A stretch of 64,000 nucleotides of DNA. Origin: Epiperipatus broadwayi. Its lineage: Eukaryota; Animalia; Onychophora. Numbering within the stretch: the first letter of the stretch is position 1; every line of letters starts with the position of its first letter. Below the pieces are notes generated by a model. The model made no database searches and was not told where the DNA came from. It saw only the letters and a program-made list of their open reading frames with translations. Of this stretch, positions 29,813-62,650 are shown piece after piece. The stretch is from positions 24,304,001 to 24,368,000 of the forward strand of contig JAQFVV010000003.1 of the NCBI GenBank assembly GCA_028023455.1, in the 5' to 3' direction. The translations under genes and the position numbers were made by a program.

Positions 29813-30046
29813 AATTTTACCATCAAGATTTGGTATCCCCTTCAAATCTGCAGTTGATAGCGCGGTTGGCGGGATGCGAAAACAAACGAAAGATTGAAAA
29901 CTGTTTGGATCTTGCCTTTCATCATAAATATCGAACATATGACGGCACATGTAATAATCTGCAAAATCCATTATGGGGAGCTTCTCTTACTCCTTTCAAG
30001 AGATTAGTCAAATCGGCATATGAAAATGGCTTTAATCTTCCTATTG
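29813..30046 (+). CDS. Pxn: Peroxidase domain 1, N-terminal exon ([10 protein letters not shown]...ENGFNLPIG)
   Basis: ttttcag acceptor at 29811-12, G/gtaagt donor at 30047; [19 protein letters not shown]. Confidence 0.93.
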
Positions 30047-33000
30047 GTAAGTGAATGGATGGGATATTAGAAAGTGGAATGTTACTAATATATATATTTT
30101 TGCGAATGGGAAAAATAAATAATTTCAAAGCTAAATAAAAAATTTCGAGCGTTAAATAAATTTTCCTAAATATTTATATAAATGTTTTTTTTTTTTTAAC
30201 AAAGTTAACTAATCTGAGAAATTAATTAAGTATTAAACCCCATTTATTACTAAGCTGTTGCAAATAAAATTAAGATGTCTATAATTATTTAAGATTAAAA
30301 TCCTTAATAATTTTAATCATTAATAGTTAAAAATCAGTGTTTGAAAGTTTTCATATAATAGTTTCATTTTTATAAAAGTTAACTGAATTTTGTATTTTCA
30401 GAATTATAATTGATCCTTGTAATGTGATGTGATGTATTATGAATGAAAGCATTAAGCGTCCTCTATTAGCTAATTGTGAAAATAAGATATAAGCTGTTGC
30501 AAATTTTTTTTTTTTAAAAAATTGAGCATAGAATTATATATCATTTTTTTTATTAAATTTTCTGCTAATTTTATTGTAATTATCTCAGAAAAACAATCAA
30601 AACTGTAGCTATGGCAATTAGTTATAATTATTGCTGTCATTTAATGTTCGAAATTGAGAAATGTTTAATTATTGATTAACATGCATTTATTCATATTATT
30701 CTGATAAAAAAAAACTATTTGATTAAGAAAATTTTTGTTTTTTTTTAGGTTGGAATAGTTCACGATTATATTTTGGATTTGCAAAACCAACAGCTAGACT
30801 GGTATCGTCATCTCTTATATCCACAAGTACAATTAGTCCAGATTCTGAATTAACACATATGGTCATGCAATGGGGTCAGTTCTTAGATCATGATCTAGAT
30901 TTAGCTATTAATGCAATCAGCCATGAACGTTTTTCTGATGGCATACCATGCACTGGCTCATGCAAAAAAGATCACCCATGTTTTCCCATAGATATTCCAT
31001 CTAATGACTCTCGCAACAGGCACAATCATCAGTGTATGGAATTTTTACGTTCTAGTGCAATTTGTGGTTCAGGAAGTACATCTGTATTTTTTAATACTGT
31101 AATGCCTCGGGAACAAGTCAATCAAGTGACAAGTTACATAGATGCTTCTATGGTTTATGGAAGCAGTGAAGCAGAGGCTCTTCGACTTAGGGATCCCCAT
31201 AGTCTTGGATTAATGAGAATGGGAATTACAATGGCCCAAGGAAAACAACTACTACCCCCAAATATTAATGCACCTATGGATTGTCAACAGGATCCTTCTG
31301 AACGCCACATTGGTTGTTTTTTAGCAGGGGATATTAGAGCCAATGAACAGTTAGGATTGTTAACAATGCACACTCTCTGGGTAAGAGAACATAATCGTAT
31401 TGCAAAGGAATTACCCAAAATAAATCCTCAATGGGATGGAGAAACTATTTATTTAGAAGCCAGAAAAATAATAGGAGCTGTATTGCAGCATATCACATAC
31501 CAGCATTGGCTCCCCAAAATTCTTGGTGTAAAAGGCATGAATATTATTGGACATTATAGAGGGTATGACCCAACTATTGATGCTTCTGTTGCTAACTCAT
31601 TTGCTGCAGCAGCAATGAGATTTGGACATACTATGATCAATCCTATTCTTCAAAGATTGGACAATGAATTTCGAAAAATACATCAGGGGCATTTACCATT
31701 ACATAAAGCTTTTTTTGCACCTCATAGACTTGTTGAAGAAGGAGGAGTTGATCCAATCCTAAGAGGTTTATTTGCTGTTCCTGCTAAAAAATTAAAACCT
31801 GATGAGTTTTTAAATAGTGAACTTACTGAACGACTTTTTGAATTAGCTCGAACTGTTTCATTGGATTTGGCTGCATTAAACATTCAGAGAGCACGCGATC
31901 ATGGAATTCCAGGATATCTAGAATTTAGAAAGTTCTGCAATCTTTCACATGCTGAAACTTTTAATGATTTGCGAGGTGAAATTCGTGACGTAACTTTAAG
32001 AAACAGGATTCAGAGAATTTATGGACACCCTGGTAAGTAAAAGATATTTTATAATTTGTAACATTAAAACTTGAATAATTTTTTTTTTTTAATTAATACA
32101 TTTTTTGTAAAAATATTGTTTTCACTTACAGGTAAAGTTAATTTAATTTGTTGAGATATGTATTTTGTTGTTGTTTATATGTAAAATTAAAACACAGTTT
32201 TTTCTTTTCTATTACTAAAAAATTATAATCTAAATGCAATATCATTAATTTCACAACAATGATTTTACCAGATAATTTTTTTTCTGGATTTAAATTTACA
32301 ATCATAAATTTTCGTGAAATCTCATCAAAATCAAGATGACTAATACCTATTTGGAAGAAATAATAAGGATATCATAGCATGCAGCCTAACATGGAAAAAT
32401 TGATCAAAGCTATAAAGCAACTTCATTTTTCTCCTTAATTATTTTTGAAAGAATTGTAATTGATTTAAATAATTTTAATTACAAGAATAATTATCGATTT
32501 TTATTAAATATATCATTTGATTTATTTAACTAGTATTTTTCTGTAAAGACTTCTGATAATTTAAAGTTTAATCATCTCTGCCCTATAACATTTTTAAAAT
32601 GTATGTATAGTTTAGTTTAATTTTTTAAATGTTTGCATTAAGACATTAATAATAAAAAAAGGATACACTTTTGAAAAGGACTACAGTAGTAAATTAAGAG
32701 ATCTAGAGAGAGGAGGAGTAGCCATATGATTGTTCTAGATAAGATATTAGGCATCTGTTAATTGGATGTAAATGCTTGCAAGTAGAAAGGGCACAAATAA
32801 TGAAGTTGTGAATAATAAATATAAACAAAGGGATTATATAGAAAGTGGGTTCTTTGTTTTTATGCTAGGTTTGGAAAAAGATAAGGGGTAAAAGCCATGG
32901 AGTTGACAAAGATTATAGAATGGAGCAGGATAGAGAAGAATATGGGGAAAACTTAGAGTGGGGAATGGAAAGAGAAGGTAAAGTGGCTAACCGATTTCTC

Positions 33001-36000: not shown

Positions 36001-39000
36001 AGTATCCATGCTCTGTCATCTTTTGATGGATTTGTTCTCATTTTGTTATAGAACTTGTTCACTATCCTTGTGAGCGTTCTATATTTGAATCCTACACAAC
36101 ATAAATCATATAGATATTTCTCAATGTTGGCCTTACAGGCAGCTTCTTGTTTTCATAAATGGTGGTTTGCATAAAGTAACAATGTTAGGCTGGTATATGG
36201 GTTTTGAAAGAGATGGATTCATAGTTCATATATTCTCTTATTTTGAAAAAGATGGATTCATGCTTCATATATCCTCTTATTTTTATTGGCTTTAAGTGAA
36301 GCTTCTCCTTTTGCACATAAATGTTGAGGTATTTTAACCCTTGTTGCTCATTTTCACATTCACTTGTCCAGATTAGTGTGATCTTTGCCTCTAGTTCCCA
36401 TTTAATTTTGTTGATTTGGAGCTCCGAGGCACATATGAAACATTGTAAAAAATTTAAAATCACTTTTGAAATTTTGTTTGGATACTAGAAGCTTTTGAAT
36501 AATAGATTAAGAATATTCTACCTGTATCTCAATTATTTAGAGCTATGTCTTAAACTTAATAAGCTTTTAAATATAAAGTTCACAAATAATTATTATATAA
36601 GTTTTTAAATTGTTAGTGCAGTGTACATGTTTATAATAGATTTTAAGATTAATATTAAAATTAATTTACATAAACAACTTTCATGCATTCATGAAAAGAA
36701 AACTAAAGGCAAATAAATTTTGTTAGAATATCATTAATTTTTTTTTTTAGATATATACTTATTTACTACAAAAGAAATTATTATTATATTAATTTCATAA
36801 CAATTTTCTTTTATAATATTATTTGTAGGTAATATTGATTTATTTGTGGGAGGAATTAGTGAAACACCAGTAGATGGTGCACGAATTGGACCTACTTTCA
36901 TTTGTCTTTTGGCCCATCAATTTAAACGTTTAAGAGATGGAGACAGGTAACATTTTTTCATTCACTGCTTTATTTTCAATGCTTGATTCAGATATTTTTT
37001 ATGTATAGAAAAGTATTAGATCACATGAAATTAATGATAATTATTTTAATACACAGGACAGATAATATATCCACTCACCATGCTTATAATCCCTTGATTC
37101 AAATTCAGGTCTAGTAATGTTGGAAATTTTTTCAAAAAGACTTTGGTGAGGGATTTTTTTTTTTTTTTCAAATACCTAAACAATAACCCAAGCCAACCAA
37201 CCATAATTATCTAATATTAATCGGGGAAACGATTAACTAACTATTCTTAACTAGAAGTAAAGAAATGGTGAATACTGACTTTTCTTCAACACTCCTTTAT
37301 GAAAAGCTTCTGCCTTAAAATGGACAGTATAACCAAAGTAAAAGTCAACCATCCAGTCATAACTATTTAATATTGGTCAGTAAATAGGTATCTAGATGAG
37401 TTTAGCTAGAGGGTAAAACAATGGTGTAAAAATATTTAAATACCATCTCTCAATTAACAAGTCTAATAAAAATTTACTGCTCCTTCACTATTCCTCTACA
37501 AAGGAGCTGTTGGAGATATTCCCTGAAGTGATGATCTATTGAAAGATTATTTTGCCCACCTTCTCCATGTGTTTCAGAGCATCAAAACTTTATATTCTTT
37601 TTTTTATTAATCAGTACATTTAATGATAGGAAATACCATAACTTGAACAAACTAAGAAATAATAAAATGGCATAAAAATTATGCCATTTTATTATTTATT
37701 AGTTTGTAGTCCTTAGTAGAAATTAAAATTCAAAATGCAGAACTTTCTCTTCCTGTATTGTTTTACAATTTACTGATATATTCCTTTATCGATATTATAT
37801 TATTATGAACCAATAAATGAAAGTTTTCCTTTTCAGGTTTTGTTTTTGAATGAGGGGATATCAGTTAATTATAAACCAGAAGTGCCATTATTTTGTCATT
37901 AGAGATAACTGATATGGTTTGAAAAAAAAATTTATAAATATTTAATTTTAGCATCATATTTCTTTCAGGTTTTGGTATGAAAACCCAGGTGTCTTCCGAT
38001 CTGAACAGTTAGCAGAAATCAAACGAACTTCCTTAGCCCGAGTAGTCTGCGACAGTGGCGATAATATTCAAATGGTTCAAAGAGATGTTTTTCTAATTGC
38101 CCATCAGGAAGATGAATGGCTGCCATGCCATCGGATACCACGTATTGATTTAAATGTTTGGAGAGAAGAAATTAATTCCCCACCTCCTACAGGTAACATT
38201 ATAAAGCTGATGTAATGCATTATTTAATCATCTTTACTCTGTTTAATATTTTGCTTAAAAAATAAGCTTATAAATTTTTATAACATTTTTTATTATTTTT
38301 CTAGCACAGCTGAGCTTTAAACGTTTAAAAAAATTAAAATGTATGATTAGAAAATGGCTAAAATAGGCTATATTGTTCTAAAAATTATCTAATTTTCTCC
38401 CCATGTTATTAATAATTTTAAAATTGTTATAGAGATGTTTGAGATTTCGTTATGTAGAATGGGGTAGGGGGGGGTAATGAGTTAGGGTTTTATGGGATTT
38501 GTCGAATTAAGAGAGTAGCTAAAACAATTACATTTTTAATGTAAGTGCACTGAATACATCTGTTTGTCTTTATGGGAAATATATGGGCTGCTCACAAACA
38601 CGCATTAGCCAGCGTGGTGAGTTTATTGGCTTTTTACTTCTGAGTTTAAGATCAAGAAACACCATGGTCTTTTTTCTCAGTGCCTGATAAAGCAGAATGA
38701 ATGTTTGTGTAAATTATAAATATTTTTCCAATACATATATACAATTATGACAGACAAAAATAAAGCATGGCCCTTATTCCCAGGAGGCTGTAAAGTCACC
38801 AACCAAGGCAGCGATTGGTGGCCGAAGGCGGAGGGTGCTAAGAATCTCCTGATTGTGGACCCAGGCTGCCATTTGATGATGACTTTTTATTTAGGTACTT
38901 ATAACTGCAGATCACTTTCAAGTGAAGGAAGATTGCAAGAATTAGAAGAAGAATTGTCTTATATTAAATGGGACATTATTGGACTTTGTGAAGTTAGAAG

Positions 39001-42000
39001 AAAAGGTGAAGAAACAATTGATTTAAAAAGTGGAAATATACTCTATTATAAAGGCACACATATTGGAAATACAAGTGGAGTAGGATTCATTATAAATAAA
39101 AAGTGGAAGAACAATATTGTGGAGATTGATGGTGTATCGGACAGAGTTGCAAGATTAGTTATACAACTTAATAGCAGATACCAAATGCAGATAATTCAGG
39201 TTTATGCCCCAACAAGTTCTCATAATGATGAAGTAATAGAAGATTTTTATATGGATGTACAAAAGGCTTTTGATCAGAGTAAACTACATTTTAAAATTGT
39301 TATGGGAGACTTTAATGCTAGAATTGGTAGACAAATGAAAGATGAAATTGCTGTAGGTAATTTTGGTTATGGTAATAGAAATGAGAGAGGCCATAGACTT
39401 GTGGAGTTTGCAGAAAAAGAAAAACTTTATATTATGAATTCATTTTTTGAGAAAAATGTTAAACGGAAATGGACATGGAAGCATCCAAATGAAGGTACAG
39501 CAGAATTGGATTATATTTTGACTAACAGGAAATACATATTCCAAGATTGTAATGTTCTTAATAAATTTAACACAGGAAGTGATTATCGATTAGTAAGATG
39601 TAAGATACATGTTAATGCAAAACTAGAGAGACAAAAATTATTAAGAAAAACAATATTTACAGTTGATATTCCTAATCTTCAGAAACATTCTAATGAATTT
39701 AAATTAGAACTTACAAATAGGTTTCAAGTGTTAGGAGATTTTGAACATGATTCAGATTTGAATGAAATTAATATGAAAATAACTGATACACTTTTAAAAA
39801 CTGCAGCAAAGATAGCTGGTAGGAAAAAGCAGCAATTGACTAATAAAATTTATACTGAGACTAGAGAATTTATGAAGAAAAGAAGGAATATGAAGATATA
39901 CAAAAATGATGTATTAAAAAGAATTGAATATCTCGAATTTTGTAAAATGGTACAGAAAAGAGTTGAAAATGATATAAGAAAGTATAACTGTGAAATAGCA
40001 AGGAAAGCTGTAGAAGAAAATAAAAGTCTCAAGAATGTTAAACAACATTTTGGTATTGGTAGGAAATTTATATCTGCAATAAGAAAAAAAGATGGAATTA
40101 TTACTAAAAAGAGAGATGACATCATGAAATTGGTAGAAGATTTTTATCAAGAATTATATAGTAATAAAGAACAAGTACCTCTTATATCTATTACATCTTC
40201 CGAATTGCCCAGAATTTTAAATGAAGAAGTGAGACATGCAATTAAATGTATGAAGAAAGGAAAGGCTCCAGGAAATGATGGAATTATAATTGATATATTA
40301 AAAGAAGCAGGTGAAGAAGTAGAAACAATTTTAGCAAAGTTATATACCAAATGTCTAAATGATAAAGATGTACCGGAAGATTGGAAGAATGCAGTAATAA
40401 TATTAATATTTAAAAAAGGTGATAAAGAAGATATTAGAAATTACAGACCTATCAGCCTTTTATCAGTTTTATATAAAATTTTTACCAAGATAATTACAAC
40501 TCACCTACAGAGAACTTTGGATTTCCACCAACCAAGAGAACAAGCTGGATTTAAAAGTGGTTTTAGTACAATAGATCATATCCAGGTATTGAGAGAAGTC
40601 ATAGAAAGGACAAATGAATATGAGTTGTCATTATGTTTTGGATTTGTAGATTATAAAAAGGCATTCGATTCTATACACATTTCTTCAGTGATTAAAGCAT
40701 TGGATCATCAAGGTATAGATCCAGGATATTGTCATATTTTAAAGAATATTTATAAAAATGCAACAGCAACAATTAGATTACATAATGATACTGGAAAAAT
40801 CAACATTGAGAAAGGTGTAAGACAAGGTGACTCCATATCTCCAAAACTTTTTACAGCAGTGCTGCAAGAAGTATTTTGTGGATTAAAATGGGAAACTAAA
40901 GGAATGAAAGTAAATGGAGAGTATTTAAGTCATTTAGATTTTGCAGATGATGTAGTTGTTTTTGCAAATAATGCTTCAGAGCTGCAGGAAATGTTGCAGG
41001 AGTTATCAGATGAAAGTAGAAAAGTAGGACTAAAGATAAATGTTAAAAAGACTAAAGTAATGTTTAATCGATTTGCTCAAAGTATGAAAATAAAGATTGA
41101 TTATGAAGAATTAGAAGAAGTTAACAGTTACAAATACCTTGGTCAGATTATTAATACAGATGGAAACATAATGGAGGAAATTAATCATAGAATTAAACTT
41201 GGTTGGAGTGCTTTTGGTAGAAATAACTTGATACTAAAAGGAAATATGCCTATGTGTTTGAAAAGGATGGTTTTTAACAAATGTGTTTTACCAGTTCTTA
41301 CTTATGGATCTGAGACTTGGACACTTAATAGAAGAGCAATACAGAGACTTCAGACCACTCAAAGGAGTATGGAGAGATGTATGTTGGGAGTAACAAGAAG
41401 AGGTCGAAAACGCAATGTATGGATAAGACAACAAACACGTGTTACTGACCTTATTGAAAAAATTAAAAGATTGAAATGGAGTTGGGCTGGACATATTGCT
41501 AGAAGAAATGATAATAGATGGACAATTGAAATTTTAAACTGGATTCCAAGAGATTGTAAAAGACCCAGAAAGAGACTACATGTGAGATGGATGGATGAAA
41601 TAAGAAAATGTGCAGGGGTGTTGTGGAAAAGAGAAGCTAAAGATCGGAGAAGATGGATTAAACTTGGAGAGACCTTCATCCTGCAGTGGATTGATAATGG
41701 TTGATGATGATGATGATGATATTTATCTAGTATTTGCAAAATTATAATTTGAATTTTGAGTGACCTAATACATTGAATATCAAAATTCAATTTAAGATAA
41801 TGTAAAATTTAGAATTGTCGATTTGAATATTTATCGAAACCTTTGTTTCATGACCTTCAAAAGAAAAAATACCCCACATACACATTCACAAACTAGCACA
41901 AAACTGATATTCTCACCTCTTAATTTATTGTATTTTTTTTCACTGTTAATTAAAGAAATAATTTACATTCGAATATCAGCCTTTCAAGCTAATTGTGCAA

Positions 42001-45000
42001 ACGCTTTACGAGTGTTAATAATAAATGAATACATTCTTACCAATACAAGATATAATATAACACTCGCAAAGCGTTTGCACAATTAGCATGAAAAGCTGAT
42101 ATTCGAATGTAAATACAAGTGTATACAGACGCTATATAAAATAAATGCTTATTTAAAGAAATAATGAAATAAAAGAAACTGATATCTTGTTAATTAAATA
42201 TTTAAAAATTATATTGTAAAAATCACTAAAAAATATTGTAGGTTGTAAAATTTTTACATTTTATTTATTTATTTTCAGAGAAAAGTATCAAATATATTGG
42301 TGATCCATACGTCCGTCAGTCCATTAATGAAGCTATAGAACAAGTAAACAAAGCAGTTGAAGATACTATTAAAAAGCTACACGATGGGCACAAACCAACA
42401 ACTCCTTCAGAATTTTTAGCCTTGTTTAGATTTCCTAATCCTGAAGCTCGGGAAGTAGCCAGGTCTGCAGAAATTTATGAGCAAACTTTGGAAACCATTC
42501 GTAGGCATATAGAAGCCGGAATGAAATTTAATTTAAGTGGTAAGTTCATTTAGTAATCTTACAAATTTTAATGCATATATAGTTATCTAATGGTAAAATA
42601 TTCCTATATGTTGAATTTAATTTTAATAAGTAAAAAATTCACTACAGTTATACATCAATTTATGGCAGGGTTACATTCCAGCAACCTGGTTACGATATAG
42701 TTAAATTATTGCACTAAAAATAAATAGGAAACAGTAATAAGTAGCCATAATGGCTATGTATTTATAATGACCATTATCTGTAAAAATCTTTTTATTATAG
42801 TTTTGACCACTGGCAGCACAATTGTTTTATTTTGATATAGTTTGTTTTATGATTATAACTTCTTCATGGTAAATTTAAATGGGTATATTGTCACATGGAT
42901 ATATATATTATTTTTAGAAAAAGTTACTGTACATTAAGAACATGCTAAAGATTTAATGACAAAATTATTATCTATCCCTTGTGTACTGTTTCATTAAAGC
43001 CAATTACTTTCATCATCATTTGAAAATGTTATTTCCTAGCAATTTTTGTCATGAGTTTTTATTATAAATGACTTTTTATTCAAAAATTGTTAATATTATA
43101 ATTCTTTGACCACTGGTTGATAGATCTTGAAGTAATGAAAGTAATTAAAATCAAAAAATAAACCAACAAGAATTATTTTTAAAATAAAATTTAATCTTGG
43201 AATTGGAATACATAAATCCTGAATTCTTGAGGTTGCCTTCAGCATTAACTATGTAAATTATGGTATTTATAGTCATTAAATTATTTTGGCTATTATTGGA
43301 TTGGAAATGTTGTGTGGAGTACTCTAAAGTTACCTTAGTATTATTTTAATAATTTCATTTTAAACAAAATACAGTACAATTATTATTTTTATGATTCTTC
43401 TTAAAATAACTAAAATAATAAGTACAGCAAGTATTATTGAATTTGACACATTTTTATAAATTGAATACTTTGAAAACTACACATGTCTAATCGAATTTCA
43501 ATTAATGAATGTTTATAATTAACAATTTTTGTAATTAATAATGTTTAATTTGTTGTTAATGAATGAAAAAAATCATTTGTTTCTCTTTTTGAATAATGTG
43601 ATAAAGAAGAAAAAAATATTTTCTTGAATGATTTGGAAACAAATATTATATCTTATTTATACAATGAATTAATAACTGGTGATTGAAAATTCCCATTGAT
43701 TTGAATTGTAAACTATTTTATAACATCTTGTATTTAATGTTTAGAATGAGCTAATAGAAGATGCTTAAACACTTTGATTTATATTGTCAGCATATAATAT
43801 ATGACTATAATGCATTGATTACATAATTGATTAATTTTTTTACCTATTTTTAAAATTTTATAATGTATTAAAATAAGCTGTTAAAAATTTCATCATTGTG
43901 TAATTTTAAGTAAGTATAGAATACATAAAATTTCTGCCAGTGTTTTAAATTGTGATGATTTAGAGACCATCTTCTCACATCTAGTTTTTTTCCAAGAATA
44001 TCAGTTTTCCATTAATATATAGATATAATCTTCAGTTCTTGAATTATTATTTTTATATCTATGTATTGGAGTTTTCATGTAGTAAAAATATAATAACTAA
44101 ATAGCTGATGTTTTACTACAATAACAAGTACTTTCCTCAGAGCTTCTTCTTTTTCAAATCATAAGAAGGTGTGTGATGAGATTTAAAATCATTATTTTTT
44201 TCTTTGTTATTTTCTCCTCATTCTCAAATTCTATTGGTTGAGAAGTTTTAAAAAATATTTTATCCTCCAATAGCTTTTTCCAAATATTATTAATTTTCTT
44301 CAATTCACACTTTTTATTTATGCTTGTAGGCCTTTTAAAAAATGTTTATGGCTTCCCTTAGCAGTCTCTAGTCATATTGTTCAATTTTTGCCAGAATATG
44401 TGTTTTATTAAAATTGATGTCATGGTTAGTTAATTTAATGTGTGAATAAATGGCTCCTGAATTGGATTTGACTCTAACTGCAAAAATGTGTTCTTCCTTT
44501 TTTATGTTTATTCTATGATTAGTCTGTCCAATGTATGAATGTTAACAAACTCCATATGGAATTTCATATACATCATGACACTCCAAAGGAATTTTATCTT
44601 TAGGGCATGGAAATACTTCATTTATTTTTTTAAATTTAGTATAAATTGTGCAGATATTATTTTTCTTTAAATATTACCAATTTTATCAGTTATTCCCTTT
44701 ATATATGGCAGAACTGTCTTAATTTCTGAGGTATCAAAAAATTTTTTTTTATTATATAAAAAAAACCCTATTGATGATCCTATGATCAAAACCATCATGA
44801 AGAAAAATGTCTGTCATCAGAAAGTCTCTTAGTTCTGTCTAAGAATATCTTTGCCACTGAAAATAATTATGCTGGATGGTGGTGAGAAGAAAAATATAAA
44901 TATTTCCCAGTGCGTGTTTGCTTTCTATATGTACCATGGGATAAAGAACCATCCTCTTTCTTTTAATTAAAATATCTAAGAATGGAAGTTGGTTATTATT

Positions 45001-48000: not shown

Positions 48001-51000
48001 TCTTTCTATATCAATTTCTTCAATCAATCTTTTTTCATTTACTTTCTCAAAGCTATACACTGTAGGAATTTTTTAGAAGAAAATAAAAATTGATAATGAT
48101 GAGTTAGGAGAAGTTAACAATTACAAATATCTTGGTCAGATTTTTTGATACATATGGAAGCACAATGGATAAAATTAAATTTAGATTAAGTGGTTTTGGA
48201 GATGCTATGTAATATTTAAAGGAAGTATGACCATTTTCAAAAAGCAAAGTTTTTTAATAGATATGTTTTACCAATTTTTATATATACAGCTAAGCCAAGG
48301 TACTTGATAGATGAGCAGTATTGAAATTTCAGATCATTCAATGTAGTATGAACAGATTGTGTTGAGAGTAACAAAAAGAAACTGAAAATGAAATATATGG
48401 GTGAGAGAACAAGCAGGTATCATTTATATTATTAAAAAAATTAAGAGAGTGAAATGAAGTTGGAAACATTGCTAGAAAAGATGATAATGGATGGGTGGTT
48501 GAAGTTTTAAACAAGATCCCAAGAGATCGAAAAGACTACATATGAAATGGATGGATAGAATGTATACTTATATGAAGTGGAATAAAAAGCTACTGGTCAG
48601 AAATATTGAATTAATTTTTTCTCTACCTTTTTTATTTTATTTTCTGTACAATAAAGTCATAATGTAAGCTGTATTAATATCCAATGCTTTTATAATATGC
48701 CAACCAAAAAATTAAAAAATGTAAATAAATAAAAAAATAAATACAAAATTTGTAAATTTAATAAATTTTACAATACAGTATTAACTACCGAGCCTCTGAA
48801 CACATGTACACATATAAAAGGGCATAGAAGAACAACGACAACACTTCTACAGTTCTTGGACATCTAATAAAGACTGGCCATGACTTCATTTCCTCCAACC
48901 CCAAAATTGTATGTATAGAAACAAACGACTGTAAAAGAAAAATAAAAGAGGCATATTTTATCAATGGTAATAATAACAACGCAATAAACAGACATGACGC
49001 CCGCTTTGATATTTTTAAAAAATGGACAACCTAACTCATTTGCATTTAATTTGCATGTATTAAGTATAATACAAACAATACCACAGTTTTCAATATGGCC
49101 GTGATTATGAAGCATGGAACCTCGAAAGCACTCAGCCTTAACTGAGTGTTTAATATTTTTCAGGCGTATACCTTCTGCAACTTGCACAGCATATGTGCTT
49201 TGTAGATTATTACATTTATTAATAATATTTCTTCAGATTAAATTAAAAGTGCATATATTTATTCATTGCTTTGATATGATAGGGCATTTGCATAAAAATG
49301 TTTCTAAAACTAAAAGTTTTATAAAATTTGTAAAGTATCTTTCTTATGTGATAAAATAAAAGTTAGAATATGACTATTATTGCATTAAAAAGCTTACAGT
49401 TTGAAGAGTTTAATCCAGAATTTGAAATGGCTAATAATAAGTAAGAGTGGCTATAAATTCCAAGACTAAAATAATTTTAAAAACATCAAAACAACTAAAA
49501 AAGCTGATGTCTGCTAATAATGAGACCGCTATTAATATTTCCTTAAAGTGAAAAAAAATTATTGAAGAAAAATGATATCCAATTGTAATGACACTGTGAT
49601 TCTTCACTATTCATTTTATTTAAAAAATAAAGATAGGAATATATATTCTTATTATTTTTACTTTTTGAATGAATGTGAATGAGTGAACATGTATATAATA
49701 TATATATTACTCCATCAATTTATTGCTAATATATGCAATATTATTTTTTTAAAAATTGGTTTATACCATAATCTTAATTTACGTATGCATATTATACATA
49801 TAAAAATGTTTGTGTAATATATGTGTGTGCATGTTAAAAAAATACCATTGCAATTCATTAAACAATATATGAGCTATTGTACATGATATATGATGTATGT
49901 AAGAAGAGCTTGGAACAAAATATAGCACATGTTGTAATTCCACTGTATTTGTTATATTTATTGTTAATGCAGGGGTGGGAAAATAACGGCCCAAGGGCAA
50001 CATGCAGCCTGCCAAGACAATCAGAAAAATCCACCTTGACCTGAGATTTCCTTCCCATGTGCAACCGAAGATTTGTCTCATATTTTTCACTAGGATGGCT
50101 ACATCAATACACATGCACAATGTTGATATGATGTGCAGTGCTTTTTCAATTGATCTGATTAATTTCAATTTTGTCTTTGCATTAGCAAATATATACATTT
50201 CCTACTTTAGTGAAACCATGAACCCTCTGAAAAAATGTAATATCGGTGATGAATGTCGTGTATTTAATGAAGAATGGACAAACAAATATTTTTTTGGTAA
50301 TACAGGGAATAAAGCAGTGTCTTTATTGTGTCATGAAAAAAAGGTGCGGCCCTCCACTAACCTTCGCTTTCACAAAGTGACCCCCAATGCATCCCTCTAC
50401 CAACCTCTGCAGCCCCCGAGCCAAAACAATCACCCACCCCTGTGCTAATGTATTAAGAAAATTTAACAGTAATCTAAAAAATTATGATTAAAGAGAAGGG
50501 GAAGTAGACCATTTTTTTTATCAAAAATATTCCAAAATTATTTTTTTTTAAAATAATTTATTTAGATATTTTTCTGTACTTAATTATGCAAAAATTATTT
50601 TTAAAATATTATGTCTTATTTAAATAATTGCATTAAAATACAATGTATGAATTTTGCTTTTCTCTGTTTTCCTTTTTGTAGGATTTATAGCAGTTATGCT
50701 AATAATCATCAAAAAAAACTTTAAAAAATATGATTTTCTTCTTTTCTGTGACATGTGATAAATCTGATTTTATTAATTTATATTTGTAGTTTTTTATAAT
50801 AATAATAATAATAATAAAAAAACCTTCTAATATTTTAGCAGTAAATAATGTTTTTTTGCTATCACTTATTTTTTTATTTCAATACTATGAGGTCTATTAC
50901 AACAAGAGTTCCCACTATAAATAAATTGTACAACTATGGCAAATATTATAATGAAGATATTTTTATTATATTTCATAAAGTTTAAATTATCAATTTAGTT

Positions 51001-54000: not shown

Positions 54001-57000
54001 TCTAATGAATGACTAATAAAAATCACTAATTGCTTTTAACTTGTTTCAAAAACCAAACATTTATCTACCACAGCCATCATTTAAAATTTGAAACCATTGG
54101 AATTTTGAACCTTTTTTTCAACAGCTGAAAATTTTCAAGCAAGCTTAGATTTTTTTTAAAAAATAACTAGCCCATATCCAATTCAGTTAGTTATCGAATT
54201 ATTATATTGTTCGGTAAATAGGTACTATATTGCTCTTAAAAACTTTCACTAATTGGAAGTTGTCTAACCTAGTGCATTCTTTATGTTTCTTCTAAAAAGA
54301 AATAATGGATAAGTATTTACCCTTAAGTGATTTTATATTTAATATCATAGACTTTCGCCCACTACTGACTTGAGAAAATATTTTGAAAGTAAATTAAAGC
54401 CCTAAATGTTTAGTCATACAATGTATTTTTATTATAAAAAATGTTGTTCGAATTTAATTTTTTATAATAAAATATACTCTGTCCATTATTTTTGAAAATA
54501 TGGAATAGTAAAATATTTCATTGACCTTATGTAAAGTGCATAAAAGGTTGTGTTATTATTGTTTATTAATGTTAGTATAGTGGAATGATTGATTTTTAAA
54601 GATAAAATAAGTTTAATATGTTTGTTATTTAGATTGAATTTAGTTCCATTTGTTTTATTTTGATAAAGTTTATTTAATTTTTATTTTTTTTAGATTTTAG
54701 TTATAAAGATTTGATTTCACCGGAAAATCTGAAGTTGATTGCAGATGCCGCACGTTGTGGAACTCATCGTAAAGTGGTAAATTGTTCAGACATGTGTTTT
54801 CATCAGAAATATCGTTCTTATGATGGAACATGCAATAATTTCCAACATGTTACCTGGGGAGCATCGCTTACTCCATTCAAGCGCTTATTAAAATCAGCAT
54901 ATGAAAATGGTTTTAATACTCCTATAGGTATTGTGCTGTTAGTATCTTACTAGGAATATGTTTGTTGTTGAGTGTGGAATGCTCAGGCTTTCAATTAAAT
55001 AAAATGAAAAAAAAAAGGGCTGTTATATTCAATCTGTCACTTGGTTATTTATACATCATATGACCTTTCTCAGTAATAACTTTATGGTTATTCTTAACAT
55101 TTAACACCATGTACTAAAAATGGTTAGAAGTAGACTTTTCCATCATCAAACACAAACTACTTTTTTCCAAAAACATTTTGAAGATGGAGGAAATAGAAAA
55201 ATTTATGAAATTATAAACATTTTGTATTGTGATATGTAAAATAATTTTAAAAAAGCAACATAAAGCAGAAACTTTAAAGTTTGTAGACAATGAAATAATT
55301 AGATTAACAATATAACAGACTAGTAGAAATGAAGTTGCAAAAAAAAAATATTAGGAAATTCTTGCTTAGTTTAAAATGAGGTATTATATGGAGAAAAAGC
55401 ATTACAATCAAGAAAGACATAATAAAGTTTGAAAGTCAAATTTTGTAAAAAAAAGAGGAAGTATTACTTTAAAATGGTTTATTGAGAATTGCAGTTAAAT
55501 ATACTTTTAATCTCTTATATTAAATTTGATATTGTTTTGTTAAAAAACATTTACATAAACTATTTATTGTCTCAATTGACAATGATATCTAAAACTTGAT
55601 TGTAAAGTAAGATCATTATTTTGAAGAAAAAAACTATAAATCCCTGTTACTAAAATATATAGTTGCTAATCTAATATTAAGTCTAAGATTAATTTCTTGT
55701 TTATGAAATTAATGCATTCCACAAGATTTAACATAATTAGATTTATGTGAAAGTTGGAAAAACTATAATTTTTTATTATTATGATATATTAATCTTTTTC
55801 TATTGGTGATCTTACTGAGTGTTTCTATTTTGAAAATATTTTTACAAAGCCTACATACATTATTTGAAGTATCATCTTTCTAATAATTTGCAAGTGCTAT
55901 ATTTTTTGTATGTACTTATTTAATGGTGTTGTTCTTAGATAGTTATTAGTAATTACTATTTTAAACTTCATTAAACATTAATATATCTTCTTATATATTT
56001 AAGTAATGAATGCATTTTAATTAACAGTTTTATGATTAATAAAGTTTTATTGTGTTGCTAATGCATGAAAGAAAAATATTTCCTCCTTCCTCTTTTTTTT
56101 TTATATAACTTTGATCAGTACAATAAGAAATAATGCTAATCTGCTGCTAATGAATGAAAGAAAGATATTTTCTTACTCTTTTTTTGTTAATTAATATAAT
56201 ACAAAAAGTTAATTTGCTGTTAGTGAATGAAAAATATATTTCTCCTCTCATTTTCAAATTGTAAAATTGAACTATTAAGTTATCTTTGAAGCTTGTGATA
56301 TATTTTGAATATTTTGCATGTCATATCTATATAATCTGTATATAGATAGATAAGTAGGTAATCTCGAGTTCAAGGCCTTGCAATATTTAAACATCTTCAA
56401 GTCATTACTTTGAACAGTACAATAAATGTAAAGATAATTGCTACAAAAATATCTTCAATCTCATATTCCTCATTGATGAAGATCAAGAGCCAGAAATTTA
56501 TTCTGGGGATTTGGTTGTCATCATTTACCTGGATTGCTGAAGTTAATGCAGATGTTAATTTTAAGTGAAGGATGTCATGTGATTATATGTTTTATAACTC
56601 ATAGAGTTAAATTAATAAGACAATGTGCTTGCAGTCTTAAATTTGAATTGAATGAAAATTTGTTACTGATAGCTCTCGAATTTTCTTCATCTGTGTCTTA
56701 TCTACATGGTTTATCACAATGCTAGAGTAAAACTCAAAAATTAAAGATTCCTGAGTCAAATCTCAAATGTCTGTTGCTCAAATATTATTTTTTGAGTAAT
56801 TTTACTATTAGATTTTTTTATTTTTAGAAATGCCATATTTTTTAAGCTTAAACTTGTTCTTGCATATTCTGTCAGCATTTCTGATAGATTTCATCCTTAT
56901 ACAATATGACAATGCCATTATCTTAAAACTAGGTTTTATGACACAATTATTAAGATATATATATATATATATATATAAAGCTTAAAAATTCATAGTGCGA

Positions 57001-60000
57001 AAAATCCATCAGAGAATAATTGATATGTTACAAATGTACTAAACTTTTCTGACAATATTCTGCAGTATCTTAACTTTGATAATTTCTTCAAAAGTATAAA
57101 TAAAAATATTGCTAATGAACACACATACACATTAACTCTACTAATAAACAAGCATTATGCACATGGAAATATAAAAGCTATAGATTTTACAGTGAAAAAA
57201 CTATCAATATAATAAAATAACTCCGCAGTCCTAGAATAGCCATTATAAGTGCAGTAAGTAATGAGTATGTCTCAAAACCCACATGACATTTCATTACTAT
57301 TGATAAAAAAACCTCAAAATTTAATTTTGTTTTTGTTGTCATTTTCTTTTGCTTTAATTCTGATTTATCTTCTGTTTATTCCTTCTTAAGTCAGGGGGCA
57401 ACATTTTTTATATAAGCAACAAGCATAAATGAATAACTTAAACTTAAATGTATGATTTGTTTATCTGTTTAATAGATTTTTCTCATACTATGCTTTTTTG
57501 TTTCTTACTAATAACATATTTCATTTGTTTTCAATCTGATGTTTTCTTTTATGTTCCTATTATTATAGTTACAACTGATTAAACTAGCATTTTTTATTAA
57601 TAAATATTTTAGATAGCCTTACATATTTTAAATATTAAAAACACTGTATTAAAGGTATATATAGTAGAAACAAGTCTCTCATGAGCTAAAGTATCTAGTG
57701 CTTGTCAGAAAACTAAGCCTTAAGATCTAGGAGTAAATGGACTAATTTATTCTGACAAAAAAAGTGGATATTTGCTTTTATGATTTTATTATTTGAATTG
57801 ATAGTACTTAATATTTTTTAAAATAATTGCTGTTAATAGTCTTTGTTGTGAAATTCACATGCATGTGTATTAAAGATAAGTTTTGCTCCAAAGGCAAATT
57901 GAATAACTAGAAAGATAAAGATTCCTGATCCAAATTTCATCCTATAACTTCTGATGCTCAGTCATGAATAATACTTGATCATCATCCTTGATAGATTTTG
58001 TAAAAAGTTAAAAAAACAATGGCCAATCTAATCGTTTCTCAAACTTTTTCATCCTCACATATTTAGATAAATATAAGATCAAACTATATTATCACATTCA
58101 AAGATTGTTTATAGATAACCAAAGTATTAATCCAGAATAGTATTCATTTATAGAACTGAAATCTGAGGCAATAATCAATAAAGGTAGCATCAGTCTTTTC
58201 AATATGAAACATTAAAGATAGCACTTTTTCATAGCAGTTCTGTAGTGGTCTAAATTTATCCTTTTTTAAACATGGATGATATTAATTATTAGAACATTTT
58301 TTGGAAATTTACAAAAATATTTTGATACTCCAAAATAAGAATAATCTACCATCAAAATAGTCTGATGGAAACATAATTTATAGAAAGAAAAAAAAATCCA
58401 AGTTGGTGAAGATGGTTTTGTACATATATTTGGATATAAATCTATTTCATGAAAAAAAAAAAACAAATATATTACTGTTTCATGAAATAGGTTTATATTC
58501 TTGGTGTTATATATCTGGTAAGCTGTATCATTAATTAAGGAATAAAGAAAATTAAAGATAGCTTAAGAATTTTTCATATAGCTGTAAATATTAAGCTTGT
58601 GGTTTCTAATGGTAAGATAAGAATGGAATTATTTGTTCTTTTAAGATTATTCTTAAAATTTTGATTATCAATTATTTCTAAAATACTTTTTATATTTTAT
58701 ATAGGTTGGAATCAATCTCATCTATATTTTGGTTTTCCTAAACCTTCTGCTCGTTTTATCTCTTATCAACTTATCAGAGCAAATAGCATTACAAGTGATT
58801 CAGCTATCACCCATATGGTAATGCAATGGGGCCAATTTTTAGATCATGATTTGGATTTAGCCATCAATGCTATAAGCCATGAAAGATTCTCTGATGGAGT
58901 AGATTGTAGGAATTCTTGTGACAATCAAATGCCTTGCTTTCCCATTACTGTGCCTGATAGTGATCCTCGTATACTTGATTCACGATGTATGGAATTTGTT
59001 CGATCTAGTGCTATTTGTGGATCAGGAAGCACCTCGATTTTTTTTAATGATGTAATGCCTCGTGAGCAAATTAATGATGTCACTAGTTTTATAGATGGAT
59101 CAAATGTATATGGAAATAGTGAAAAAATAGCTTTAGATCTCAGAGATGTCAGAGGCAATCGTGGTTTGCTCAAAATAGGAATTGTGATGGCATCTGGGAA
59201 ACCTTTAATGCCTCCTAATCAAAATGCTCCAATGGATTGTCAGCAAGATCCAAGAGTCCGTCATATAGGATGCTTTTTAGCAGGAGATATACGAGCCAAT
59301 GAACAGCTTGGTCTTTTGTCTATGCATACCTTATGGGTACGTGAGCATAATCATATAGTCTTGGAACTTCAAAAGATTAATCCTCATTGGGATGGGGATA
59401 TGCTTTATCATGAAGCTCGAAAAATTATTGGAGGGATGATGCAGCATGTAACATACAAACATTGGCTACCAAAGATTCTAGGACCTAAAGGAATGGATTT
59501 GCTTGGTGATTATAAAGGATATGATCCAAATGTGGATCCCTCAGTATCAAACAGTTTTGCAACAGCAGCTCTTAGATTTGGCCATACTCTTATCAACCCA
59601 GTACTGCACCGTTTAAATAATACCTTCCATCCTATACCTCAAGGACACATTCCATTACATAAAGCATTTTTTGCACCTCAAAAGTTAGTTGAAGAAGGTG
59701 GAATTGATCCTATTTTAAGAGGTTTATTTGCAGTTGGGGCTAAAAAATTAGAACCCCATCAATTTTTAAATTCAGAATTAACTGATAGACTATTTGAACT
59801 AGCCAGAAGTATAGCTTTGGATTTAGCAGCATTAAATATTCAGAGAGGTCGTGACCATGGCTTGACCTCATATAATGAATTTAGGAAGTTTTGTAATTTG
59901 ACTGTTGCAGATACGTTCCATGATCTGAGACATGAAATTCAAGATACTTCTGTGAGAGAAAAATTGCATCGCATATATGGTCATCCGGGTAAGTTGTTAA

Positions 60001-60615
60001 AGTGTATTTTCATTTAACTAATATGAATTAAATGAAGTAATTGATTTGGGTGCTAAGACCATACCAGCTACTTGTACAATGAAATAATTTAGAATAAGTA
60101 ATTTTATGAGAAGCTGTTGTGGTTTACAATTATTTATGGAAATTCTCAATGAGGTGTTTTTAATATATATGAAGAGAGATCAATTAATTAGTCTTGAAAC
60201 ACATATTTTTATTTTGGATACTGACATTGTCATAAGATATTATTTTATTTATTTATTTTTTCATCCAGGGGTTTATTTTAAATTCTGTAATTCTAATGTT
60301 AATGTATTTGTAATCCCTTGATCATAATTATAGGTAATTACATTTTAAAGAGTCCCCTACCTTTTTTTATAGTAATTTACAAAACTTTTAAGATTTTTTT
60401 TTTATTATTTTAAAATAGTATAATTATTAACATCAAATTAATTCTTTTTAATTATAGACACTTTTTTTTTACTTCAATATTAACTGTTTTTACATAGGTA
60501 ATATTGATCTTTTTGTTGGTGGCATAAGTGAAACACCCATAGAAGGAGCTAAAATGGGTCCAACATTCATGTGTTTAATTGTAGATCAGTTTAGAAGAGT
60601 AAGAGATGGTGACAG
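29813..60615 (+). CDS. Pxn: Peroxidasin-like heme peroxidase gene (partial) with two tandem peroxidase domains. Exons 29813-30046, 30749-32032, 36829-36946, 37969-38192, 42279-42539, 54694-54927, 58705-59988, 60498-60615
   Basis: All eight exons have AG/GT boundaries and compatible phases (1-1,1-1,1-2,2-1,1-1,1-1,1-1,1-2), giving 3757 nt of open frame. Motifs YRxxDGTCNN, [43 protein letters not shown]. The pro-region and the [11 protein letters not shown] motif are peroxidasin-type. Orthology to Pxn versus a paralogue is not established. Confidence 0.9.
30749..32032 (+). CDS. Pxn: Peroxidase domain 1, core exon (1284 nt)
   Basis: Poly-T-ag acceptor, G/gtaagt donor. Encodes [40 protein letters not shown]. 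Confidence 0.96.
34060..34387 (+). mobile_element. Retrozyme-like family A insertion: inverted 75-bp 5' segment (34061-34135) + sense segment containing a hammerhead, with a 10-bp TSD
   Basis: 34061-34135 is the reverse complement of 34271-34346; TSD AATACATCGT at 34050-59 and 34388-97; homologous to 45800-46540. Confidence 0.85.
34194..34246 (+). ncRNA. Type I hammerhead ribozyme (family A)
   Basis: CCAA CTGATGA GTGCT ggttt AGCAT GAA ATACTAT A / TTG. Core intact, predicted AUA cleavage after 34237. Stem I is partly decayed in this copy. Confidence 0.75.
35530..36440 (-). mobile_element. Penelope-like element relic (RT thumb + GIY-YIG)
   Basis: [61 protein letters not shown] across frameshifts. 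Confidence 0.7.
36829..36946 (+). CDS. Pxn: Peroxidase domain 1 exon ([14 protein letters not shown]...FKRLRDGDR)
   Basis: tgtag acceptor, AG/gtaac donor; not in the ORF track, read manually. Confidence 0.93.
37969..38192 (+). CDS. Pxn: Peroxidase domain 1 C-terminal exon (FWYENPGVF...[19 protein letters not shown])
   Basis: tctttcag acceptor, G/gtaac donor; [20 protein letters not shown]. Confidence 0.92.
38747..41719 (+). mobile_element. RTE-clade non-LTR retrotransposon with an open 985-aa APE-endonuclease + reverse transcriptase ORF (38747-41704) and a (TGA)6 tail
   Basis: APE motifs [31 protein letters not shown] motifs [30 protein letters not shown]-terminal WAGHIARR...RP..R...RW.DEI. 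Microsatellite 3' tail. 5' boundary not resolved. Confidence 0.95.
41961..42114. repeat. 57-bp inverted repeat (3 mismatches, 40-nt loop), CpG-rich
   Basis: 41961-42017 versus 42058-42114. Confidence 0.9.
42279..42539 (+). CDS. Pxn: Pro-region exon of peroxidase domain 2 ([23 protein letters not shown]...[25 protein letters not shown]...MKFNLS)
   Basis: attttcag acceptor, G/gtaagt donor, phase 1-1. Matches the peroxidasin GDPFV..SI.EA...LLALFRYP...ARA.EIFE.TL pro-segment. Confidence 0.9.
43991..45600 (-). mobile_element. Penelope-like element relic (RT + GIY-YIG, frameshifted) with a decayed hammerhead in the 3' region
   Basis: [92 protein letters not shown]. Hammerhead-like CAAGAA CTGAAGA...GAA...TA/TTCTTG at 43991-44043. 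Confidence 0.88.
45615..46540 (+). mobile_element. Retrozyme-like family A, locus 2: inverted segment (~45615-45793) + ~452-bp monomer x1.65 (45794-46540)
   Basis: Period 452 (ggagaagattgaa at 45795 and 46247); hammerhead copies at 45719-45773(-), 45882-45936(+) and 46337-46391(+), each with different mutations; no clear TSD. Confidence 0.8.
45719..45773 (-). ncRNA. Type I hammerhead ribozyme (family A) with an intact palindromic stem III
   Basis: The minus strand reads GATCT gag tCAA CTGATGA ATGCTggtttGTCAT GAA ATACGTAT A / TTGG AGAT. Confidence 0.75.
46620..47050 (+). mobile_element. Decayed copy of the RTE (RT N-terminal region)
   Basis: 46720-46860 aligns by eye to 40370-40510 of the intact RTE. 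Confidence 0.65.
47091..47157 (-). ncRNA. Isolated decayed hammerhead related to family B
   Basis: The minus strand reads CCTCA CTGATGA cagccagaacta GAA ACCAGT C / TGAGG. Confidence 0.6.
47745..48060 (-). mobile_element. 3' end of another LINE (RTE-X-like) with a (GAT)n tail
   Basis: The minus strand encodes [20 protein letters not shown] and ends in gatgatgat. Confidence 0.5.
48075..48600 (+). mobile_element. Decayed copy of the RTE 3' part
   Basis: gaagttaacaattacaaatatcttggtcagatt etc. match 41085-41600. Confidence 0.75.
48789..49150 (+). mobile_element. 3' fragment of a Penelope-like element (GIY-YIG C-terminus, stop at 49034, and 3' UTR)
   Basis: Frame from 48789: RASEH...[14 protein letters not shown]...[10 protein letters not shown]...AINRHD...KKW*; one in-frame stop. 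Confidence 0.72.
49970..50442 (+). mobile_element. Internally deleted hAT (Buster/SPIN-like) element, 473 bp
   Basis: TIRs CAGGGGTGGG / CCCACCCCTG; 8-bp TSD TGTTAATG / TGCTAATG; retains the transposase N-terminus ([16 protein letters not shown]...KAVSLLCHE) at 50218-50340. Confidence 0.85.
51950..52020. repeat. Imperfect 28-bp hairpin
   Basis: GTAGTTGTgcagTCATAGTTGgaGAAAA pairs with TTTTCatCAACTATGAtcgaACAACTAC. Confidence 0.6.
53560..53800 (+). mobile_element. Highly decayed LINE C-terminal fragment
   Basis: Frameshifted FE.WC..K....S...KNEQV pattern typical of RTE-type C-termini. Confidence 0.4.
54694..54927 (+). CDS. Pxn: Peroxidase domain 2, N-terminal exon ([12 protein letters not shown]...[20 protein letters not shown]...NTPIG)
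   Basis: Poly-T-ag acceptor, G/gtattg donor; 234 nt, the same size as the domain 1 counterpart. Confidence 0.93.
56468..56510 (+). ncRNA. Isolated decayed hammerhead related to family B
   Basis: CCTCA ttgatga agatcaagaGCCA GAAA tttattc TGGGGAT aligns with the family B ribozyme. Confidence 0.55.
58705..59988 (+). CDS. Pxn: Peroxidase domain 2, core exon (1284 nt)
   Basis: atag acceptor, G/gtaagt donor. Encodes [40 protein letters not shown]. Confidence 0.96.
60498..60615 (+). CDS. Pxn: Peroxidase domain 2 exon ([14 protein letters not shown]...FRRVRDGDR); the next exon lies beyond the window
   Basis: catag acceptor, AG/gtaac donor; 118 nt like the domain 1 counterpart. Confidence 0.93.
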
Positions 60616-60739
60616 GTAACATATTTGATGATGATTATATATATATAGTAATGTTTTTTATGTGTATTAAAGTGGTAATTCTCTATATACACTTACAAAT
60701 AACAGTATGTTGTTGGTAAACAGTTATAATTTACACATA

Positions 60740-61410
60740 TATTCTTCATTTACAGATATTGTCAATCCACTGCAGAATAAAAGTTTCTGCAATCTCTAGT
60801 CTCTTTTTCCCACAATATGCCAGAAAACTTTCTTATTTTATCCATACATACATCTCACACCTGGTCATTTTCTAGGCATTTCACAAATGATTCAGGATTT
60901 AGTTTAAGATTTCAACTGTCTGCCTATTATCATCTTTTCTAGAAATAGGTCTAGTGAAACTTCACTTCAATCTTAAATTTTTTCAATATAAGTGATACTT
61001 GTTTGTACCTTTATCCGTGTATTTCTTATTACTTTTAGCATTAAATCTTTCAATATTTCATTGAGAGATCAGAAGTCTTTGAATTATTCTTCTATTAAGT
61101 ATCCAAATCTCAAATCCATAAGTAAGAACTGATAAAGCAAGTCTATTAAAAATCTTCCTTTTCAAACATGTAGGCATATTTCTTTCTAATATTAAGTTAT
61201 TTCTACATTATATTTTCATGTGTATTAATAAACTGATCAAGGTATTTTTAGTTGCTAGCTTTTAATTTATAATAATCTTTATTTTCATTGAACATTACTT
61301 TAGTCTTTTTAGGATTGGTTATCATACTTCAGATTTATTTGTCATGATCATAATTTCCATTAATCTTGATTTGGTAATTTGAAGTGGCATGAATTGCTAT
61401 GTCTTAGCTT
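60740..61410 (-). mobile_element. Decayed RTE copy, antisense
   Basis: The reverse complement of 61020-61200 aligns to 41225-41400 (aaatatgccta..tgtttgaaaagga, cagttcttacttatggat). Confidence 0.7.
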
Positions 61411-61538
61411 GTTGACTGTGCCAAGTTTTGCTATGTCTTAGCTCACTAATCCCCTGAGTAAAAATAACAAATTTCGTATGGAATATTATTTTTTGAGGAC
61501 TTAAAGAACTCAGTGAAGACTTCAATTTATACAATTTA

Positions 61539-62650
61539 ATCACCAGATGGAGCTTACCAATAGCTCTAATCAAGCTTTTATTTTATAAATGCTGAAAGAG
61601 AAAAAATTCAAAATCTCTATTGAGGTCCCCATCTCCAGACCAATTAGTCTTGAGCCTGTGGCTCACCTCAGTGGAGTGCTGGGACTCTAAAAACTAGATC
61701 TAAAATACTAACTCAAAAGTCAGCACTTATAAAACACATTTCTTATCAATTTGAAAGCATGAATTTATCAAACACGTAAATGTCTTCAAATCCAGCCCTA
61801 CAAACCAGATAGTTATATGGGTCTGAATTCAGCTGAGCTTCATCATACAGCAATAGCCTCTGCAATATATAGCATTGCAAAAGCCTTCAAAGGTACACCT
61901 ATAATAATTAAAAATGTCATAAATTTTGTAACTTGTTTTCTAGCTTGCATTTTATGATCACCAGATGGAGCTTACCAATAGCTCTAATTAAACTTTTATT
62001 TTATAAGTGCCGAAAGAGAAAAAATTCAAAATCTTTATTTGGGTCCCCATCTCCAGACCAATTGGTTCTGAACCTGGGCTCACCTCAGTTGAGCACTGAG
62101 ACTCTAGAAACTAGATTTAAAATACTAACTCAAAAGTCAGCACTTATAAAACGTTTCTATCAATTTGAAAGCATGAATTTATCAGACATGTAAATGTCTT
62201 CAATTAGTCTGGAGATGGGGACCCCAATAGAGATTTTGAATTTTTTCTCTTTTGGCACTTATAAAATAAAAGCTTGATTAGAGCTATTATTAAGCTCCAT
62301 CTGGTGATCATGAAATGCAAGCTAGAAAACAAATTACGGAATTTATGACTTTTTTTTAATTATTATAGGTGTACCTTTGAAGGCTTTTGCAATGCTATAT
62401 ATTGCAGAGGCTATTGCTGTATGGTGAAGCTGAGCTGAATTCAGACCCATATAGCTATCTGTTTTGTAGGGCTGGATTTGAAGACATTTACATGTCTGAT
62501 AAATTCATGCTTTCAAATTGATAGAAATATGTTTTATAAGTGCTGACTTTTGAGTTAGTATTTTAGATGTAGTTTCTAGAATCCCATCACTCCACTGAAG
62601 TGAGCCACAGGCTCAGGACCAATTGGTCTGGAGATGGGTACCTTGATAGA
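61539..62650 (-). mobile_element. Retrozyme-like family C: 418-bp monomer x1.6 (61539-62203) + inverted segment (~62201-62650)
   Basis: Period 418 (caccagatgg at 61541 and 61959); reverse-complement arm; three hammerhead-like folds; shares a 29-nt motif with family B; no TSD found. Confidence 0.85.
62583..62638 (+). ncRNA. Hammerhead-like fold with a non-canonical core (family C)
   Basis: CCCAT ca CTCCA CTGAAG TGAGCC aca GGCTCA GG ACCAATTGGT C / TGGAG ATGGG. All three stems are well formed but the core deviates from CUGANGA/GAA. Confidence 0.65.

Follow-up and report, generated by a model that had tools for sequence, protein, structure and literature searches.

We analysed a window of 64 kb from the onychophoran Epiperipatus broadwayi (contig JAQFVV010000003.1, positions 24,304,001 to 24,368,000 of the forward strand), in which an earlier reading made from the letters alone (the sequence-only reading) had proposed a peroxidasin-type gene with an internally duplicated peroxidase module. 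The window is AT-rich (about 27% G+C) and eukaryotic, and it carries two peroxidasin-type haem peroxidase modules in tandem on the plus strand, whose peroxidase domains are here called D1 and D2. Exon borders were taken from the genomic sequence, as stop-free segments bounded by AG acceptors and GT donors, and Pfam An_peroxidase matched each piece scanned, which means all but the 118-nt exons (Table 1). Exons of 234, 1284 and 118 nt occur twice, with the same sizes, AG/GT borders and phases; the two 234-nt exons are 68% identical to each other, and the one in D2 (54694-54927) is 68% identical to Branchiostoma PXDN. Once joined, the exons of each module can be read without a stop in a single frame, whose first two bases finish a codon (phase 1). 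The 224-nt exon that ends D1, exon 5, stops one base into a codon, so that a splice from 38192 to 42279, the start of a 261-nt linker exon, keeps the frame and makes a Glu codon out of G + AG. Were the donor at 38193 passed over, a TAA at 38214-38216 would close the frame after seven codons.

The 224-nt and 261-nt exons were each seen once. With tblastn and profile hidden Markov models (HMMs), built from more than 100 peroxidasins and run on all six-frame open reading frames (ORFs) of at least 18 aa, we found no second copy of the 224-nt exon in the window, including 60616-64000, and no second linker exon upstream of D1 in the window. The claim of identical exon sizes and phases in both modules thus holds for the 234-, 1284- and 118-nt exons, and with two of the five exons of the cassette present in a single copy, the repeated cassette of five exons and 2121 nt is a reasonable extrapolation. 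Apparent homology upstream of 29813 proved spurious, as it crosses stop codons. Because the exon at 29813 begins in phase 1, another exon must precede it, at a distance of more than 29.8 kb. No leucine-rich repeat (LRR), immunoglobulin (Ig) or von Willebrand factor type C (vWC) exon was found in the window, either by tblastn with eleven full-length peroxidasins and several multi-peroxidase gene models or with an HMM for the fourth Ig domain (Ig4); nor did the window contain a signal-peptide exon, or HYR or other C-terminal exons like those of hemichordate relatives (tblastn with a Glandiceps model). These results bear out the statement that no signal-peptide, LRR or Ig exon separates the two domains, and they place both gene ends outside the window: the gene is longer than the 64 kb, and the last exon of D2 lies beyond 64000. 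A scan of the whole window against Rfam at gathering thresholds matched zero families.

Table 1. Exons, introns, catalytic residues and the main intron element of the window (window positions)
Feature	Position	Strand	Details
D1 exon, 234 nt	29813..30046	+	Start of peroxidase domain; AG/GT; Pfam An_peroxidase positions 1-39, E=2.4e-13
D1 core exon, 1284 nt	30749..32032	+	AG/GT; Pfam An_peroxidase E=7e-135
D1 exon 4, 118 nt	36829..36946	+	AG/GT; covered by transcript contigs
D1 last exon (exon 5), 224 nt	37969..38192	+	End of peroxidase domain; Pfam positions 487-530, E=3e-10
Intron between modules, 4086 nt	38193..42278	+	Donor GT at 38193; skipped in transcript contigs
Linker ("pro-region") exon joining D1 to D2, 261 nt	42279..42539	+	AG/GT; linker HMM E=5e-36
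D2 exon, 234 nt	54694..54927	+	AG/GT; Pfam An_peroxidase E=1.7e-12
D2 core exon, 1284 nt	58705..59988	+	AG/GT; Pfam An_peroxidase E=5e-134
D2 exon, 118 nt	60498..60615	+	AG/GT
D1 distal Gln/Asp/His	30877-30894	+	
D1 Ca loop	from 31132	+	
D1 distal Arg/ester Glu	31336-31347	+	
D1 proximal His	31627-31629	+	
D2 distal Gln/Asp/His	58833-58850	+	
D2 Ca loop	from 59085	+	
D2 distal Arg/ester Glu	59292-59303	+	
D2 proximal His	59583-59585	+	
RTE-type non-LTR (long terminal repeat) retrotransposon	38583..41720 (approximate borders)	sense (+)	Intact 985-aa ORF 38747-41704; GAT-repeat tail

The proposal of an in-frame splice from the end of D1 into the linker exon is confirmed by transcript contigs. 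These are short-read assemblies of four public runs (X3, X4, X6 and X9), picked by index searches for both exon 5 and the linker exon and aligned to 36700-42600 of the window. Contigs from three of the runs, representing two organisms, join 38192 directly to 42279 and skip the 4086 nt in between. In X3 record 1, of 916 nt, 37967-38190 aligns at contig positions 499-722 and 42278-42470 at 724-916; because the AG at 38191-38192 is the same as the AG at 42277-42278, the one-letter gap in this alignment corresponds to the exact 38192-to-42279 splice. Exon 5 adjoins the linker exon in the same way in X4 record 8, a contig of 3400 nt, and the two exons are also adjacent in X6 record 15 (3388 nt), which comes from an organism other than that of X3 and X4. 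In the same contigs exon 5 starts two letters early, the signature of the splice between exon 4 and exon 5, and intron 36947-37968 is likewise missing. The depth of the junction-crossing contigs also accounts for exon 4.

Cover of the introns tells the same story from the other side. Depth is zero over the unique intron sequence 37685-37881 in X3, X6 and X9, and over 41822-42018 in all four runs. The bin 38079-38275 has, in every run, the depth of its exon 5 share to the decimal, which means that 38193-38275, the region of the read-through stop, received zero cover in all four. With intron depth at zero and 36947-37968 spliced out, the contig material is spliced RNA and not DNA. The sequence-only reading had named transcripts that end after 38192, together with an independent promoter and signal exon for D2, as the outcome that would speak for two tandem genes; with zero depth at 38193-38275 and 41822-42018, the comparison favoured one transcript. 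Where window and contigs differ, a third codon position is affected in 17 of the 20 cases listed (five of five in the 118-nt exon, six of seven in the 224-nt exon and six of eight in the linker exon), so the predicted frame is conserved as coding among the sampled relatives. The transcript carries on past module 2, as the X4 contig extends 2913 nt beyond the linker exon and so exceeds the length of a complete module 2 by about 1 kb.

The label peroxidasin-type also stands. We computed maximum-likelihood trees of 56 and 73 peroxidase domains, with branch support from the Shimodaira-Hasegawa-like approximate likelihood ratio test (SH-aLRT). D1 and D2 are sisters in both (SH-aLRT 97 and 99) and together are nested in the ecdysozoan peroxidasin clade (SH-aLRT 98), apart from peroxinectins, chordate peroxidases and DBLOX, their position relative to nematode and arthropod peroxidasins not being resolved by the trees. 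D2 is 59-64% identical to canonical peroxidasins of scorpion, spider, centipede, termite, annelids, amphioxus and vertebrates, and only 36-48% identical to other multi-domain peroxidases. The linker exon points to the same family. Its translation is 43% identical to Branchiostoma PXDN residues ~588-694, the stretch between Ig4 and the peroxidase domain; its start coincides exactly with the end of the Ig domain, and it is the sole match of the linker HMM in the window. By its sequence, the exon of 261 nt corresponds to the linker that peroxidasins conserve between Ig4 and the peroxidase domain, and is not a generic pro-region.

Over the exons they share, D1 and D2 have 70.5% protein identity (383 of 543 residues) with one 1-residue gap each, in close agreement with the roughly 70% and one indel each that had been judged by eye. 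Non-synonymous divergence (dN) is 0.23 and synonymous divergence (dS) about 2.15, the latter near saturation, which gives a dN/dS of about 0.1; both domains are under strong purifying selection. Recent gene conversion between the modules was ruled out, since third-position identity is about 47% overall and there is no near-identical tract. The segments described earlier as shared and derived are indeed confined to this pair: two stretches of 14 and 18 residues are common to D1 and D2 and occur in none of 16 other aligned peroxidasin-type sequences. The sister position of the domains and a dS of about 2 support the duplication as old and lineage-specific, as had been proposed.

No stop or frameshift interrupts either domain, and the catalytic set is kept in both: GQFLDHD supplies the distal Gln and His, the ester-forming Asp and the Ca-binding Asp, RANE the distal Arg and the ester Glu, and RFGH the proximal His, and the Ca loop is present as well. 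The nearest solved structures are myeloperoxidase and lactoperoxidase. Outside the catalytic residues, D1 is short of cysteines that D2 and canonical peroxidasins keep (NCLDLAFHH against NCSDMCFHQ in D2; 29890-29920), and its tail (38150-38192) has neither a CCxxC motif nor a dibasic (R-x-K/R-R) site. The branch leading to D1 is slightly longer than that of D2 (0.26-0.32 versus 0.19-0.24).

We consider it likely, with a probability of about 0.7, that the locus is one peroxidasin-family transcription unit with a tandem-duplicated exon block, giving an mRNA for at least two complete peroxidase domains per chain. Long ago, a block of exons in a peroxidasin gene would have been duplicated in tandem, beginning with the linker after the last Ig domain (Ig4) and reaching some ten residues beyond the peroxidase domain. 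The copies would lie head to tail, with the last exon of module 1 spliced to the linker exon of module 2; since the block is symmetric in phase (1-1), the splice from 38192 to 42279 keeps the frame. The product would be a single polypeptide in which an 87-residue linker joins two peroxidase domains. Of this, the data show the splice, an open reading frame, catalytic residues that are intact and purifying selection on both copies. By analogy with the family, both domains would be expected to bind haem and to oxidise halides or other substrates with H2O2, so that each chain would have two active sites, and the protein would presumably act on the extracellular matrix as peroxidasin does (PMC3533774, PMC4420034). 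The domains are probably not cleaved from each other, as the D1 tail is without the CCxxC cysteines and the dibasic processing site.

Several points weigh against this interpretation. As short-read assemblies, the contigs span exon 4, exon 5, the linker exon and what follows, but show no single molecule with both cores, and the RNA nature of the runs was only guessed. The N- and C-terminal parts of the gene lie outside the sequence seen. Large protein searches returned no protein near-identical to either domain and no independent gene model: with the D1 core, the D2 core (against 1.84 billion representatives), the Glandiceps double model and a mixed alignment made to let in long proteins as queries, the best matches reached at most about 64% identity. 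Finally, the X9 assembly breaks at the junction, and its module 2 contig is 2.4 times deeper than that of module 1 (49 versus 20.3), which may reflect 3' bias or isoforms without module 1.

The X9 data would also fit a model of optional or mutually exclusive cassettes, in which most proteins would have module 1 or module 2 only and the two-domain message would be one isoform among others. Tandemly duplicated exons are a textbook origin of mutually exclusive splicing, all cassette borders here are in phase 1, so that either module could be skipped in frame, the X9 contigs stop exactly where exon 5 ends, and an X4 contig ends at the border of exons 4 and 5. We nevertheless regard this model as unlikely, because the 38192-to-42279 junction is crossed unbranched in three runs, and the junction contigs are as deep as the flanking exons; the joined form is thus not a rare one. 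An alternative partner exon, none of which was seen within the window, would have to lie outside it. Equally unlikely, in our estimate, is a further extension of the exon-block model to a modular "poly-peroxidasin", with at least three phase-symmetric cassettes running past the window and splicing that varies the number of active domains in a protein (one, two or more); such an array is compatible with, but not shown by, the extra ~1 kb of transcript in X4 and the unequal depths in X9.

Another rival model has two separate tandem genes, in which module 1 would end at the TAA at 38214-38216, module 2 would start from a promoter and signal exon of its own, and occasional read-through would produce the junction. 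That stop lies seven codons past the donor, an ATTAAA is present at 38333, and gene predictors sometimes do fuse tandem peroxidase genes wrongly, as the P0121 model of Glandiceps and the existence of single-unit relatives of ~800 aa illustrate. This arrangement is nonetheless improbable. Depth falls to zero at 38193-38275 and 41822-42018 in the four runs and reaches only 0.4-4 over 42019-42215, upstream of the linker exon its frame meets a stop at 42239-42241, and no ATG in that frame lies between this stop and 42279, the sequence between the domains has no Met or hydrophobic signal segment, unlike P0121, and the junction is present in two organisms. We give still less weight to the idea that one domain is decaying or non-catalytic and serves as a pseudo-enzyme spacer. 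The cysteine losses of D1, including the missing CCxxC of its tail, and its slightly longer branch would fit a decaying copy, but the absence of stops and frameshifts, the retention of all haem-ligand, ester-bond, catalytic and Ca residues and a dN/dS of about 0.1 in both domains make this very improbable.

A single transcription unit of this kind departs from the peroxidasins described so far. Canonical peroxidasin, according to reviews, has a single peroxidase domain with LRR, Ig and vWC modules on its flanks (PMC3533774, PMC4420034). The window domains resemble those proteins in sequence (55-64% identity), in being nested within their clade, in the conserved linker of D2 and in having identical catalytic residues. 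They differ in that two peroxidase domains, and not one, share a reading frame, and in that no LRR, Ig or vWC exon lies within the 64 kb. The D1 tail also lacks everything that follows the peroxidase domain in canonical peroxidasins: the W-x-x-CC-x-x-C motif, the dibasic processing site, the coiled coil and the vWC domain.

Double peroxidases are known from arthropods, where a polypeptide may contain two animal haem peroxidase domains, as in LsPxtl-1 of the salmon louse (PMC10579435). The window gene is like these DBLOX-type proteins (mosquito DBLOX, LsPxtl-1) in having two haem peroxidase domains in one chain. It is unlike them in its place in the tree, and the distinction from DBLOX drawn by the sequence-only reading is correct: the DBLOX-like doubles form a separate clade with support of 100 and are only 36-42% identical to the window domains, and the clades of their first and second domains (96 each, 100 together) leave out both D1 and D2. 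In the DBLOX-like proteins of Priapulus, spider, copepod and leafhopper, the first domains form one group and the second domains another; that duplication is therefore independent of the one in the window gene, much older, and earlier than the split between priapulids and arthropods. In the reviews, fused duplicated peroxidase domains are mentioned only for bacterial long peroxicins, with expression unverified (PMC4420034).

Full-text literature searches turned up no paper on a tandem-domain peroxidasin, so the suggestion that the gene is undescribed is right within the papers searched. It needs qualifying for the databases, which hold uncharacterised gene models with 2-4 peroxidase domains from other lineages: Amphiura filiformis (four), Siganus canaliculatus (three) and Glandiceps talaboti (two). 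Like the window gene, these are lineage-specific tandem repeats of peroxidasin-related domains; unlike it, they fall outside the canonical clade, in other subfamilies (41-48% identity), and we found neither transcript evidence nor a publication for them. The Amphiura model has no internal signal peptide and the Siganus model has one. In Glandiceps P0121 (XP_077991679.1, RefSeq, 1647 aa) a second Met and signal peptide occur at residue 813, each peroxidase unit is followed by an HYR domain, and single-unit relatives of ~800 aa exist, so the gene predictor seems to have merged two tandem genes here. The internal signal peptide makes part of the Siganus model, too, look like wrongly fused tandem genes. 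The presence of multi-peroxidase models in several lineages indicates that tandem amplification of these domains is recurrent. Among them the window case stands out in combining a place in the canonical peroxidasin clade with transcript support for the fusion.

Most of the 4086-nt intron that separates the modules is taken up by a retrotransposon, which the sequence-only reading had not mentioned; without it the intron would be less than 1 kb. The ORF of this RTE-type element contains Pfam Exo_endo_phos and RVT_1 domains (endonuclease and reverse transcriptase), and the element is apparently young and autonomous. Its multi-copy RNA contig depth is very high (10^3-10^5), with loose ends at 38583, and its nearest Atlas clusters are RTE-like and mostly from arthropods. 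Diverged RTE fragments (71-73%) lie elsewhere in the window, at 46567-47018 and 48079-48556 in sense and at 60785-61311 in antisense orientation. A 154-nt hairpin-like element at 41961-42114, some 165 nt before the acceptor of the linker exon, consists of a 57-nt inverted repeat whose arms are 95% complementary and enclose a 40-nt loop; RNA depth over the element is near zero. It may be a miniature inverted-repeat transposable element (MITE) or a hairpin element.

Peroxidasin makes the sulfilimine cross-links of collagen IV, and it is described as a trimer with one catalytic domain per chain. As double peroxidases of another subfamily are already known, a two-domain layout is unusual and not unprecedented for a haem peroxidase, and because some multi-peroxidase models in other phyla are clearly mis-fused neighbours, RNA evidence is needed case by case. 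In the window gene the layout is transcript-supported and has been retained under purifying selection since an old duplication. With two conserved and apparently active domains per chain, it would be a clean case of domain duplication by way of a symmetric-phase exon block. If an array of further cassettes should be real, it would mean that the catalytic sites of one matrix protein are dosed in a combinatorial way. For the two-domain protein itself, the questions raised are whether the second site gives more local oxidant output or an altered substrate range, and whether, given that the D1 tail cysteines are gone, it may take the place of oligomerisation.

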